Of a stretch of DNA of 64,000 nucleotides, positions 491-9,809 are shown piece by piece (the stretch's first letter is position 1; each line of letters begins with the position of its first letter). The stretch is from NCBI GenBank assembly GCA_028826165.1, contig JAPDFW010000055.1, positions 496,001-560,000 on the forward strand, in the 5' to 3' direction. This DNA comes from Anaeramoeba ignava BMAN (lineage: Eukaryota; Protista; Anaeramoebae). The position numbers and the translations under genes were made by a program. Below the pieces are notes generated by a model that saw only the letters and a list, made by a program, of their open reading frames with translations, made no database searches and was not told the DNA's origin.

Positions 491-1963
491 TTAATAATTT
501 ACTTCAAATGCAACATTCACTCGGATTTTTCGATTTCGAATTTCTTTTCCATCAAATTGTAAAGCTTTTTGTTGGTCTTCATGAGTTTTAAAATCAACAA
601 ACCCAAAACCTTTACTAGTTCCATTTCTTTCTCTTGCAATTCTTGCTTCTTTCACATCAAATTTTTGGAATATTCTTTTGAGTTCTTCATCTTTGAGATA
701 ATATGAGAGATTTGTGATGTGAATCTTTGTTTTGCTATTTTGTTTCTGATTATTATTCTTTTTCTTATTTTCATCTTTTAATTCAATTTTGATTTTTCTT
801 CCTTTTAATTGGAAATTTGGAAAGTTTTCAATAATTTTTTTAGCATCTGTAGAAGATTTTAAATCAACAAATCCATATCCAGCTGATCTTCCATTTTTTT
901 TAATCAGAGAGACCTTTTCCCTATTTTTGGATCAGAAATTTTTTCAAAAATAAATTTGATTGGATAAAAATTTTTTTGATTTTGATTTTTACACTTCAAC
1001 AAATTTGGAAAATTCTTTTTTGATTTCTTCTTCAGTAACTGAAAAAGGGAGATTACCAAGATAGACTGTTTTAATCGAATCATTTTCATCTTCTGGTAAT
1101 TCCTCACTATTTTTTTGATTTTGAATTTGATTTTGAATTTGAATTTGGTTTTGATTTTGATTTTAATTTTGATTTTGATTTTGATTTTGATTTTGATTTT
1201 GATTTTGATTTTGATTTTGATTTTGATTTTGATTTTGATTTTGATTTTGATTTTGATTTTGATTTTGATTTTAAAAAAAAATGAATTACTTGATTTTTTT
1301 TGCATCCAAAATAAGTGATTTCCAACTTGCTGTTCCTCCTTTTTCTAAATCAAAAACATGATAGCTATTGTCAACAGTTTTCCAATCACTTGATTCTTCT
1401 TTCATTTTTCCATTTTCTTTTTTTATTCCTCCAAATTTCCATTTACAATCAACAAAAGCAGGTTTTTCAGATTCAACAAGTTGTTTACAAATAGGACAAA
1501 CACATTTTTTCAAAATGTCATGGGAACTTATTTCAAAAGTTCCAAATCCAAATTGGATAATAACCCATTGATTATGAGCTTTACAATCTTTATTAGTACA
1601 TTTTCCTTCAAGATTCAATCCATTACAAGCATATCTCCAATCAGGAGCATCTGTTACAAAATCTCTTGTTTTCCAAGCATCTTTAGTCATATCAGCAAAT
1701 TCCAAATCTGGAGAAATTCCTCCTCCTCTTAATCTCAAAACGAAATGAATTGTTGTTCCACACTGAATATTGTAATCTTTTATTTTCTTTTCTGATTGAA
1801 GTTGCATTCTTTTATAGATTAATCTAATTTGTTTAACAGGAATTCCTTCAGATTCATGAACTTTCTCCATCAAACTATCTACGGTTTCAGATTCATCAAC
1901 ATCTAAAGCAATTACTGTTCCTTTTAAATTTTTAACAAAAATTTGCATTTTTTGTTTTTGCAT
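491..1963 (-). CDS. Ubl (LRLRGG) + uncharacterised Cys-rich domain, probably spliced to two RRM domains
   Basis: ORF 1286-1963 encodes Ubl-X. Intron 1107-1289 (GTAATT..ATAG) and intron 921-992 (GTAAAA..ATAG) join in frame to KTVYLGNLPFSVTEEEIKKEF..GRSAGYGFVDL and KIHITNLSY..SKGFGFVDF..IRVNVAF (RNP2/RNP1 motifs). Confidence 0.75.
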
Positions 1964-2319
1964 TTTCTTTTGTTTTTGAAAAATAATTGAAATAAAAAAA
2001 TTTAATCAAAAATAAAAATGAAGAAGATTTTATTTGAGAATTTGTTTTTAAATATTTTACTTGAAAAAGAAAAAGTGGATAGTTTTTTCAAATCTAAAAC
2101 TCTTTTACTTCTTGAATAAATCTAAACTTGTCAACTTTTTGATTAAATATTTTTTATTGAAAAAAAAAAAGGGAAAAGTGGATAATTTTTTTTAGTTAAA
2201 TTTCTTTTTTTAATTTAATTTATTAAAAATTTTAAAGAAAAAAAAATAAGAGATCAAAATAATTTTAAAACAAAAAAAATGAATTTCAAATTGAATTTAA
2301 TTATTGAAAAAAGAAGAAA

Positions 2320-3237
2320 TTATTTCAAGTTTTTTAAATGACATGTAAATTGAAATTTTCTTTTTGATTTTGGTTTTGATTTTGGAATTAAATTGGAATT
2401 GAAATCTTCATTAAAATTAGAATTAAAATTAGAATTAGAATTAAAATTAGAATTGGAATTGGAATTAAAATTGGAATTAAAATTAGAATTAAAATTGGAA
2501 TTAGAATTAGAATTGAAATCTTCATTAGAATTAGATTTGGAATTAGAATTGAAATTTTGATTGCGAATTCTATATCCATTTCTTCTTTCAGCATAAAAAG
2601 TAAGTGATTTCCAACTTGATATTCCACTTTGTTCTAAATGAAAAACATAATAATGATTTCCAATAGTTTGCCAATCACTTGATCTTGTTTGAATTTTTCC
2701 ATTTTCTGTTATTCCTTCAAATCTCCATTTACAAGTAGAAAAAGCAGGTTTTTCAGGTTGAATAAGTTCTTTACAAATAGGACAAATACATTTTTCCAAA
2801 ACATTTTTAGAATTCATTTCAAAAGTTCCAAATCCAAAATGCATAATAACCCATTCATTATGAGCTTTACAATCTTGATTAGTACATTTTCCTTCAAGAT
2901 TCAATCCTTTGCAAGCTTTTCTCCAATCAGGAACATTTTTGGAAAAGGTTTTTTTTTTCCAAGCATTTTTAGTCATATCAGCAAATTGCATATCTGGTAA
3001 ACAAGAATCTCCTCTTCTTAATGTCAAAATTAACTGAATTGTTGATTCTTTGTGAATATTGTAATCATTTAATGTTCTTCCCGGTTTTAATAGTTTTCCT
3101 GCGAAAACAAGTTTTTGTTGATCTGGTGGAATTCCTTCTTTATCTTGTATTTTGGATTTTATTTTCTCTGTTGTATCGAATGGTTGAACTTTTAAAGTAA
3201 TTGTTTTTCCTGTTAATGTTTTAATATAAATTTTCAT
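2320..3237 (-). CDS. Ubl (ends LRRGD, no di-Gly) + Cys-rich domain + N/S/F low-complexity tail
   Basis: [25 protein letters not shown]; [17 protein letters not shown]. Confidence 0.85.
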
Positions 3238-3869
3238 TTTTTGTTTTTGTTTTTGTTTTTGTTTATGAAAATTGATTGAAATAAAAAAATTTAATCAAAA
3301 TGAAAAATGAAGAAGATTTTATTTGAAAATTTGTTTTTAAATTTTGATCAATAAAAACGGAAAAAAAACTTAAAAAGAAATTTTTTTTTCCTTTTCCATT
3401 TCTTATTTATTTCTCAATGTTTCCAAAAAAAAAGGAAAAAAAGAAGAAAAGAAAGAAAATCAATTTAATTTTAAATAATTAATTTTTGGATCAATCAAAA
3501 AAGGAAAAAAAGAATTAAAATTAAATTTGAATTTGATTTTGAAATTTCATTTATTAAAAATTTGAGAAAAAAAGAGATCAAAACAATTTCGAATTTGATT
3601 TTGATTTATTAAAGAATTTGAATTTGAATTTAAATTTGATTTTGATTTTGATTTTGGTTTTGATTTTGATTTCGGTTTTGATTTTGGATTTAAATTGATT
3701 TTGAATTTGATTTTGATTTTGATTTTGATTTAGATTTTGGTTTTGATTTTGGTTTTGATTTTGGTTTTGATTTTGGTTTTGATTTTTGATTTGAATTTGA
3801 ATTTAATTTTTGATTTTGATTTTGAATTTAATTTTGATTTGAATTTGATTTTGATTTTCAATTTAGAAA

Positions 3870-7939: not shown

Positions 7940-8214
7940 TTTCTTCTTATTTTTGTTTATGAAAATTAATTGAAATAAAAAAATTTAATCAAAATGAAAA
8001 ATGAAGAAGATTTTATTTGAAAATTTGTTTTTAAATTTTGATCAATAAAAACGGAAAAAAAACTTAAAAAGAAATTTTTTTTTCCTTTTCCATTTCTTAT
8101 TTATTTCTCAATGTTTCCAAAAAAAAGGAAAAAAAGAAAGAAAAGAAAGAAAATCAATTTAATTTTAAATAACTAATTTTTGGATCAATCAAAAAAGGAA
8201 AAAAAGAATTAAAA

Positions 8215-9085
8215 TTAATTTTGAATTTGAATTTGATTTTGAATTTGATTTTGAATTTGAATTTGATTTTGATTTTGATTTTGATTTTGATTTTGATTTT
8301 GATTTGATTTTGAATTTGAATTTGATTTTGAATTTGAATTTGATTTTAATTTTGATTTTGATTTTGATTTTGATTTTGATTTTGAATTTAATTTTGAATT
8401 TGATTTTGATTTTGAATTTAATTTTGATTTTGAATTTAATTTTGATTTTGATTTTGATTTTAATTTTGAATTTGAATTTAATTTTGAATTTAATTTTGAT
8501 TTTAATTTTGAATTTGATTTAAATTTGATTTTGATTTTGAATTTGATTTTGAATTTTGAATTTGATTTGATTTTGATTTTGAATTTGAATTTGAATTTGA
8601 TTTTAATTTTGATTTTGATTTTGATTTTAATTTTGAATTTGATTTAAATTTGATTTTGAATTTGATTTTTGATTTGAATTTGAATTTGAATTTAAAATTT
8701 GATTTTGAATTTTGAATTTGATTTTGATTTGATTTTGATTTTGATTTTGATTTTGAATTTTGAATTTGATTTGATTTTGATTTTGAATTTGATTTTGAAT
8801 TTGAATTTGATTTTGATTTGAATTTGATTTTGATTTTGATTTTGAATTTTGAATTTGATTTTGATTTTGATTTTTGATTTTGATTTTGATTTTGATTTTG
8901 AATTTGAATTTGAATTTGATTTTGATTTTGATTTTGATTTAGATTTTAATTTTGATTTTGAATTTGATTTCGAATTTAAAATTTGAATTTGAATTTGAAT
9001 TTGAATTTGGTTTTGAATTGAAATTTGATTTAAATTTGATTTTGATTTTGATTTTGATTTTGATTTTGATTTTGGTTTTGAATTG
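8215..9085. repeat. (GATTTT/GAATTT)n hexamer microsatellite
   Basis: Directly visible; source of spurious IL/KI ORFs. Confidence 0.95.
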
Positions 9086-9089
9086 AAAT

Positions 9090-9809
9090 TTAGTAATTTC
9101 TTTTAGTATAAAAAGTAAGTGATTCCCAAGTTGCTGTTCCTCCTTTTTCCAAATCAAAAGTATGATAATTCTTATCAACAGATTTCCAATCACTAGATTC
9201 ATTTGTTATTTTTCCATTTTCTTTTTTTCTTCCTTGAAATTTCCATTTACAATCAACAAAACCAGGTTTTTCAGGTTCAACAAATTGTTTACACATAGGA
9301 CAAACAGCTTTTTGGAAAACATATTCAGAAGTCATTTCAAAAGTACCGAATCCAAACATCATAACAACCCATTGATTATAAGCTTTACAATCTTTATTAG
9401 TACATTTTCCTTCAAAATTCAATCCATTACAAACAGTTAACCAATCCGGACCTTCATCTGTTAATCCAACGGTTTTCCAAGCATCTTGGGTCATATCAGC
9501 AAAGTTAAAATCCATATTTCCACCACCTCCTCCTCTTAATCTCAAAACTAAATGAAGTGTTGATTCTCTTTGAATGTTGTAATCATTTAATGTTCTTCCT
9601 TCTTCAAGTTGGAATGAAACGTATTCATCATCGTTATTACTTTCTTTTTTTTCTTGTTCTGTTTTTTTTCTTTTGTAAATAAGTCTTTGTTGATCTGGTG
9701 GAATTCCTTCTTTATCTTGTATTTTGGATTTGACATTTTCTGTTGTATCAGATGGATCAACTTCTAAAGTGATTGTTTTACCAGTTAAAGTTTTAACAAA
9801 AATTTGCAT
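9090..9809 (-). CDS. Ubiquitin-like (LRLRGG, ~18-aa charged insertion) + Cys-rich domain
   Basis: ATG at 9809, [33 protein letters not shown]; [17 protein letters not shown]. Confidence 0.85.

Follow-up and report, generated by a model that had tools for sequence, protein, structure and literature searches.

A widespread, so far undescribed cysteine- and tryptophan-rich domain of the ubiquitin system in a tandem gene cluster of Anaeramoeba ignava

What is the cysteine- and tryptophan-rich domain that recurs beside ubiquitin-like (Ubl) and RING domains in a row of genes of the anaerobic amoeba Anaeramoeba ignava BMAN, and what does it do there? The genes lie at the start of a 64,000-nucleotide stretch of GenBank assembly GCA_028826165.1 (contig JAPDFW010000055.1, positions 496,001 to 560,000 of the forward strand), referred to here as the window; coordinates are those of the window unless the contig is named. 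Six minus-strand open reading frames (ORFs), numbered here as genes 1 to 6 (1286-1963, 2320-3237, 3870-5669, 6073-6660, 7037-7939, and 9090-9845), each encode one copy of the domain, which spans about 135 to 143 amino acids and for which we use the working name X. A first-pass annotation made from the sequence alone had described this shared domain in six tandem genes, and both the ORFs and the motif string it gave were recovered in our alignment. We conclude that X is a ubiquitin-system domain that is widespread and had yet to be described. It is distributed patchily across eukaryotes and giant viruses and has undergone lineage-specific expansions, of which the A. ignava cluster is one.

Aligned across the six genes (130 to 144 residues), X has a mean column identity of 79% and 57 invariant columns, including C31, C40, C45, C74, C77, and C91 as well as W27, W51, W93, W112, and W132. 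The X profile scores 272 to 295 bits on each local copy (E values of 1e-80 to 1e-87), which places the similarity of these copies far above chance. X did not arise as a feature of this locus alone: a HMMER scan with the X profile over 1.84 billion cluster representatives recovered a family of 1,888 representatives in eukaryotes and giant viruses at an E value of ≤1e-3 (866 at ≤1e-10). A word-index search with one X retrieved the window's own two proteins only, and it was the full HMMER scan that revealed the family. Named members come from bdelloid rotifers (Rotaria and Adineta), Anaeramoeba flamelloides, the Mucoromycota fungus Jimgerdemannia, and the gregarine (apicomplexan) Selenidium, the best named relative being from A. 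flamelloides, the sister species. The ESM Atlas also holds a 90-member cluster from Mucoromycota and a cluster from Euglenozoa, while a search of that resource limited to named clusters gave no match. Among giant viruses, X is present in Pandoravirus salinus (S4W648), Pandoravirus inopinatum (A0A0B5IXC8), and Barrevirus (A0A3G4ZQ93); it is encoded at two loci on viral contigs of 2.2 to 2.5 Mb, and the viral X genes are GC-rich, one of them being split, apparently by an intron.

The first-pass annotation had been unable to assign X to a named family, and neither could we. Pfam gave no match at an E value of ≤0.01 in the six paralogs and no family across 96 diverse family members; at ≤1, the commonest families (zf-RING_4 and DUF7559, both short zinc-knuckle matches) reached just 5 of the 96. 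PDB sequence searches, using either a single X or a 96-row profile, returned chance matches only (an antibody light chain and centrin; best E values of 0.05 to 1), and the literature searched, including surveys of protist ubiquitin fusions, yielded no description of X. Database names for family members go no further than "ubiquitin-like domain-containing" or "RING-type domain-containing," and UniRef lists proteins with X only as "Uncharacterized protein." Although genes for ubiquitin fusions and RING ligases are textbook material, a conserved domain of approximately 135 residues, placed between ubiquitin and RING in nearly two thousand clusters, had escaped naming.

Structure prediction gave a similar picture. 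With the 96-row alignment as input, AlphaFold2 produced a very confident model of X (predicted local distance difference test score [pLDDT] of 97.1; predicted template modeling score [pTM] of 0.90), which is all-beta with eleven strands and two short helices. Foldseek found no match to this model in the PDB at an E value of ≤1e-3, and VIA fold searches of the PDB likewise found none. The beta-tent/CULT, ZnF-UBP, parkin RING0, and SIAH/TRAF folds were considered as candidates and none was prominent, the sole row being a weak match to TRAF3 (PDB entry 1kzz; Foldseek E value of 0.55). As modeled, X therefore resembles no solved fold, and the combination of a very confident model with the lack of a match recommends it for experimental structure work. 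Predicted structures of other family members, on the other hand, superpose closely. Template modeling (TM) scores are 0.85 to 0.94 against the models of rotifer Ubl-X and Mucoromycota Ubl-X-RING clusters and 0.92 (E value of 6e-14) against that of the P. salinus protein annotated as "Ubiquitin" (S4W648); the Barrevirus "Ring and ubiquitin domain protein" is also a strong match. The giant-virus proteins so annotated are true X homologs (TM scores of 0.86 to 0.92, 30 to 33% identity, E values of ∼1e-13), in which only the ubiquitin and RING parts have been annotated and the X part is unnamed. In rotifers, one cluster consists of NAD(P)+-arginine ADP-ribosyltransferases (87% of its members have PF01129), and a domain found there also superposes on X residues 21 to 143, with a TM score of 0.69; judging from these models, X-like modules may also be attached to ADP-ribosylating effectors.

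Which residues hold this fold together is suggested by the wider alignment. C40 and C45 (CxxxxC) and C74 and C77 (CPxC) are invariant in all 96 diverse members and are the sole invariant cysteines; in the AlphaFold2 model, both cysteine knuckles sit in loops beside strands. The first-pass annotation had listed six invariant cysteines, which is correct for the paralogs and does not extend to the family. C31 is local to the copies of this genome, C91 is present in 93 of 96 members, and two further positions that are frequently cysteine among the 96 (C35 in 48 and C86 in 69) are occupied by Asn and Pro, respectively, in this genome. A single structural Cys4 zinc site is thus likely to be the core of X, with a second cysteine group that is variable. 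That X would bind zinc through the CxxxxC and CPxC motifs had been guessed in the first-pass annotation, and the invariance of these cysteines agrees with the prediction.

The partners of X place it in the ubiquitin system. Among 118 full-length matches, Pfam detected ubiquitin in 67 and zf-RING_2 in 50, the latter in X relatives with E values down to 1e-13. Layouts were counted in 147 representatives by means of the X hidden Markov model, a phmmer search with ubiquitin as the query, and a regular expression for the RING. The most frequent layout was Ubl-X-RING (46 representatives, 8 of them with two Ubls), followed by X alone (43), Ubl-X (29, 2 of them with two Ubls), X-RING (27), and X-Ubl-X or Ubl-X-Ubl-X (2). 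By this motif count, a Ubl and/or a RING is present in 104 of the 147, and the RING is always C-terminal of X. The usual layout consists of ubiquitin ending in LRLRGG, a short Gly-rich linker, X, and a RING-H2 or, occasionally, a U-box (found in one member); rare partners also include Hint and Crinkler-N domains and a weak match to cupin. The constant linkage to Ubl and RING proposed in the first-pass annotation hence stands for the family as a whole; in the A. ignava cluster itself, the RING was captured from an unrelated RING-kinase family, as described below. On both points on which that annotation had staked its case, the outcome agreed with it: no named family was matched, and most homologs carry a Ubl or RING partner. 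Because X keeps a fixed place beside domains that recruit E2 enzymes, it may be a new module by which the ubiquitin system recognizes substrates or ligands.

The junction between Ubl and X bears on whether the two parts separate. Conservation of the ubiquitin tail extends to its end in the 61 Ubl-X rows, with R72 in 42 of them, L73 in 53, R74 in 52, G75 in 56, and G76 in 60; the complete di-glycine at positions 75 and 76 is present in 56. The residue that follows is Gly in 44 of these 56 and Pro in none. From the di-glycine to X there are mostly 3 to 7 residues, mainly small ones, after which an invariant Phe and a near-invariant Asp open the domain. Integral Ubl domains normally lose the di-glycine, whereas processed modifiers keep it, and polyubiquitin, Ub-eL40, Ub-eS31, and FUBI-eS30 are cut at this site by deubiquitinases. 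Cleavage by deubiquitinases is therefore the simplest reading for Ubl-X, whose precursors would be cut in the same way. When the Ubl-X portion of gene 3 was modeled with AlphaFold, both domains had a mean pLDDT of 95.1, the linker block had a value of 62, and the pTM was 0.67, which suggests two independent domains on an exposed, flexible linker. The first-pass annotation had supposed that X is released or retained depending on the paralog, and the sequences fit: genes 1, 3, and 6 retain the di-glycine followed by Gly (LRGG-G), genes 2 and 5 read RRGD, and a diverged seventh copy just outside the window lacks the di-glycine. A myristoylation signal at the Gly that cleavage would expose was considered and rejected on inspection, as what follows the di-glycine in genes 1, 3, and 6 departs from the usual motif.

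The reading that we favor joins these observations as follows. The protein would be made as a ubiquitin-fusion precursor, from which deubiquitinases would cut after the di-glycine, as in polyubiquitin and in ubiquitin-ribosomal protein fusions, to yield two products, a ubiquitin or Ubl competent for conjugation and a protein composed of X and its effector. X would serve as a zinc-stabilized module that recognizes targets or ligands and thereby directs the effector attached to it. This effector would be a RING or U-box E3 in most lineages and, in this genome, a captured RING, a RING-kinase, or two RRMs. In paralogs that lack the di-glycine (genes 2 and 5 and the seventh copy), the Ubl would be kept as a permanent domain. 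We put the probability of this combined reading at roughly 0.55, with higher confidence in the facts of family and architecture and lower confidence in the mechanism. Several points weigh against it. Two local paralogs and the seventh copy are without the di-glycine, so cleavage is not universal. The set of 61 rows demanded a near-full-length ubiquitin match and may thereby be enriched for intact tails, and the pTM is only an indirect sign of domain independence. The case for a recognition role is drawn solely from the position of X beside E3 and effector domains. The 43 representatives of X with no detected partner include many fragments or diverged N termini. Finally, the RING in this genome is N-terminal and comes from another family, and the canonical X-RING unit is not kept here.

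The same data suggest, more tentatively, a broader reading, to which we give rather less than even odds. Ub-GG-X-RING proteins would then make up an unrecognized class of E3 ligases, fused to ubiquitin, found in eukaryotes and giant viruses, and built on a new zinc-stabilized beta fold, in which the ligase is delivered with its own ubiquitin and freed by cleavage at the di-glycine. X would be a new recognition or sensor domain, repeatedly expanded and rewired (with kinase, RRMs, ADP-ribosyltransferase, U-box, and Hint) in conflict-prone lineages (rotifers, Mucoromycota, Anaeramoeba, and pandoraviruses). Given the strongly conserved, exposed LRGG junction, one may ask more widely whether it is common for a ligase to be supplied with its own ubiquitin, in cells and in giant viruses alike. 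For the putative defense or signaling role suggested in the first-pass annotation, the evidence is circumstantial: the patchy distribution, the lineage expansions, the viral copies, and the ADP-ribosyltransferase, kinase, and Crinkler-N partners are all compatible with it.

Proteins that keep an N-terminal Ubl for good offer an obvious alternative. In parkin and UHRF1, as in the X family, a single chain holds an N-terminal Ubl, a zinc-binding middle (predicted for X), and a RING. By analogy with these proteins and Rad23, the Ubl of Ubl-X could be integral and uncleaved, docking on the proteasome or autoinhibiting the adjacent domains, with X binding cargo; Ubl-X proteins would in that case be shuttles or regulated factors. 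Genes 2 and 5 (RRGD) and the seventh copy, with its three Ubls, are in keeping with this idea, since all lack the di-glycine and have intact ORFs; forms with several Ubls also occur elsewhere in the family. For the family at large, however, the junction argues otherwise: an LRLRGG tail is typical of processed modifiers, the di-glycine is retained in 56 of the 61 rows, with Pro after it in none, and both the predicted disorder of the linker and the pTM of 0.67 speak against a fixed Ubl-X interface. The Ubls of parkin and UHRF1 are regulatory and have no processable di-glycine, unlike those of the X family, and the middle parts of these proteins (RING0/IBR in parkin; TTD-PHD-SRA in UHRF1) are solved folds that do not appear among the structural matches of X. 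We consider an uncleaved Ubl to be unlikely.

A single metagenomic protein also bears on this point. P0038 (322 amino acids; ENA) has the order ubiquitin-Hint-X, with the Hint domain exactly at the junction and starting with Cys directly after the tail (LRLRPG-C). Such a layout would allow self-cleavage or a thioester at the ubiquitin C terminus without a deubiquitinase, and a Hint domain at this place is a further argument against a permanently joined Ubl. BUBL proteins, described in ciliates, consist of a ubiquitin-like domain followed by a bacterial-intein-like/Hint domain. P0038 shares this order, from which it would follow that its Ubl is designed to part from what lies downstream. It is, however, a single case; the remaining X family has a plain di-glycine junction that would need a deubiquitinase in trans.

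If the Ubl is indeed removed, X might still be something other than a recognition module. UBA52 (Ub-eL40), RPS27A (Ub-eS31), and FUBI-eS30 (FAU) resemble Ubl-X in having, at the N terminus, a ubiquitin or Ubl with an (L)RGG end to which a small Cys4 protein is directly fused (the zinc being predicted in X), and the di-glycine of Ubl-X is as well conserved as that of the ubiquitin-ribosomal fusions. Both classical extension proteins, eL40 and eS31, are small Cys4 zinc proteins fused after the di-glycine. X could accordingly be a third type of ubiquitin C-terminal extension protein, that is, a structural or nucleic-acid-binding zinc protein for which ubiquitin acts only as a cleavable chaperone of folding or solubility and the RING is secondary. 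Beyond the Cys4 site of X and its likeness to the classical extension proteins, this reading could draw on the 29 representatives that are plain Ubl-X and on gene 1, which probably adds two RRMs. Diverse non-ribosomal ubiquitin fusions are, moreover, known in protists, with numerous partners that include RING fingers and hypothetical proteins (PMC6332867). It is nonetheless doubtful, and we rate it below the uncleaved Ubl. The PDB sequence searches gave no similarity of X to ribosomal proteins; X is an all-beta domain of ∼135 amino acids, unrelated in sequence to eL40, eS31, and eS30 and usually followed by a RING-H2. A C-terminal RING-H2 or U-box is present in half of the family. Furthermore, ubiquitin-ribosomal fusions are universal, whereas X is patchy and expanded in some lineages, which is unlike a core component.

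X could also be an enzyme or a sensor that acts on ubiquitin itself, by self-processing, by binding the ubiquitin tail, or by positioning E2~Ub. In favor of this are the small and little-varying distance that separates the di-glycine from the first conserved strand (F-x-D), several polar residues that are near-invariant in the family (D9, R28, E37, N42, and Y119), and a near-invariant fifth cysteine, C91, in 93 of 96 members. X has, however, no invariant His and no recognizable catalytic set, and its four invariant cysteines fit a structural zinc site. It also occurs free of Ubl (RING-X and X-RING), and the PDB fold searches returned no structural match of X to ZnF-UBP, UBC, or protease folds. 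We therefore regard a direct action on ubiquitin as very improbable. Beta-gamma-crystallin domains (spherulin 3a, protein S, and others) can also be named among the closest known systems. Taken as whole proteins, those that contain X fall within known kinds, namely, ubiquitin fusions and Ubl-RING ligases, and are not a new kind of system.

The A. ignava locus itself is a lineage-specific tandem expansion of seven genes, six of which are in the window. The first-pass annotation counted six, as is correct for the window, and overlooked the seventh, a diverged copy that lies ∼600 bases before the window and encodes three Ubls followed by X (contig positions 495019-495393). A profile search of the whole 42.8-Mb assembly, which located this copy, found X to be confined to the cluster. 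In a quick tree from which the viral copies were left out, the seven local X domains form one clade (support of 98 in the Shimodaira-Hasegawa-like approximate likelihood ratio test) that is not nested among other sampled members. The Ubls are of two types (genes 1 and 3 versus genes 2, 5, and 6) and differ more among themselves than the X domains do, which hints at exchange between copies.

The RING found here has a different history. The RING-kinase half of gene 3 has at least 40 full-length paralogs scattered over other contigs (43 to 76% identity), and gene 4 has its RING in a 78-residue segment that matches gene 3 and is of the same origin. Because this N-terminal type of RING belongs to an unrelated RING-kinase family, the local RING is a secondary capture and not the C-terminal RING-H2 of the X family. 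Members of the RING-kinase family often stand in tandem arrays (contigs C128, C61, C71, C73, C20, and others), and some copies contain stop codons; several paralogs lie in ORFs of 500 to 660 amino acids and so may bear other C-terminal additions.

Could the cluster be nothing but decaying or selfish duplicated DNA, without function and possibly of viral origin? The relatives in pandoraviruses would suit this idea, as would the ratios of nonsynonymous to synonymous substitution rates (dN/dS) of 0.8 to 2.1 obtained between paralogs by the Nei-Gojobori method. When codon frequencies were modeled by maximum likelihood, however, the same pairs gave omega values of 0.2 to 0.7, with one pair at 1.18. 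Positive selection was rejected for the same reason: the Nei-Gojobori values above 1 vanish under the codon-frequency model and are an artifact of ∼78% A+T. All seven ORFs are intact, X has its 57 invariant columns, the base composition of the cluster is that of the adjacent DNA (∼21 to 25% G+C over the first 10 kb of the window), the RING-kinase partner comes from a native multicopy family, and the local X copies form their own clade among the sampled members. Given intact ORFs and omega values of 0.2 to 0.7 for most pairs, the local genes look functional and constrained, and a functionless cluster is, of the alternatives considered here, the one that we find hardest to credit.

The six genes of the window differ in what surrounds X and so provide a natural variant series, with predicted cleavable and noncleavable Ubls, with and without fusions to RING, kinase, or RRM. 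Pfam detected ubiquitin in five of the six (72 to 95 bits). Of the layouts given in the first-pass annotation, three cases of Ubl-X, one RING-kinase-Ubl-X, and one RING-X were borne out by Pfam and the ORFs. Gene 3 (3870-5669, minus strand) is a single ORF of 599 amino acids whose parts were delimited by Pfam, the alignment, and AlphaFold models: a C3HC4 RING (residues 8 to 45), a protein kinase (residues 94 to 328, ∼4686-5390; Pfam Pkinase, 171 bits), a Ubl with the tail LKLRGG-G (residues 381 to 452, ∼4314-4529; Pfam ubiquitin, 72 bits), and X (3873-4301). In gene 4 (6073-6660, minus strand; P0001 in the protein database), a RING (∼6526-6639) with 68% identity to that of gene 3 is joined straight to X (6076-6465), without Ubl or kinase. 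Pfam models score the RINGs of genes 3 and 4 at 17 to 28 bits, slightly below the curated cutoffs, and the eight-ligand C3HC4 pattern (C-x2-C-x13-C-x3-H-x2-C-x2-C-x6-C-x2-C) is complete in both.

Genes 2 (2320-3237) and 5 (7037-7939), both on the minus strand, encode a Ubl with the tail LRRGD, in which the di-glycine is gone, then X (2578-3009 and 7280-7711, respectively; 98% identity between the two) and a low-complexity tail. The tails are 80-amino-acid stretches rich in Asn, Ser, and Phe that derive from hexanucleotide repeats (2330-2570 and 7040-7270, minus strand); the repeats differ in length, although the copies are otherwise 98% identical. Gene 6 (9090-9809, minus strand) encodes a Ubl with the tail LRLRGG-GGG followed by X (9093-9524), and its start ATG at 9809 is the same as that of the database protein P0002. 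Its Ubl contains an 18-residue insert rich in Lys, Glu, and Asp (9618-9671, minus strand), placed between the positions that correspond to residues 48 and 49 of ubiquitin. As the DNA lacks GT...AG boundaries, this insert is probably a loop within the coding sequence rather than an intron.

Gene 1 is the case in which the layout of the first-pass annotation, Ubl-X-RRM-RRM, is probable only. Its first exon (1286-1963, minus strand) encodes a Ubl (∼1721-1948; Pfam ubiquitin, 75.9 bits; tail LRLRGG-G) and X (1289-1717). Two RRM domains follow on the same strand in two exons (993-1106 and 491-920), separated by a 72-base GT...AG intron inside RRM1 (921-992). The stretch 995-1105 matches RRM_1 with 24.2 bits over model positions 1 to 22, and the stretch 494-919 matches it with 92.8 bits in two segments that make up the rest of RRM1 and the full RRM2. 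Between X and the first RRM exon, three-frame translation and splice-site positions point to a candidate GT...AG intron of 183 bases (1107-1289, minus strand), the length of which is a multiple of three and which consists mostly of an (AAAATC)n repeat with three in-frame stop codons. The stop codon of gene 1 (1286-1288) overlaps the candidate GT donor; the donor G is position 1289, the last base of the final Lys codon, and the acceptor AG is at 1107. The first RRM exon shares the reading frame of the X ORF and lacks a start codon, for which reason it probably continues gene 1. A product of gene 1 of ≤250 amino acids has no match in the protein database, whereas the products of genes 4 and 6 are present.

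Two neighbors of the cluster complete the locus. Next to the seventh copy, at contig positions ∼493607-494860 on the plus strand, is a gene whose 417-amino-acid product contains a TLDc domain (57.9 bits). An ORF of 87 amino acids immediately upstream of gene 6 (9958-10221, minus strand) encodes a ubiquitin-like domain (Pfam ubiquitin, 57.5 bits) that lacks the di-glycine and has a Cys-rich end, CSCCSCFII, resembling a CaaX prenylation box; it is presumably comparable to the membrane-anchored ubiquitin-fold (MUB/UBL3) proteins.

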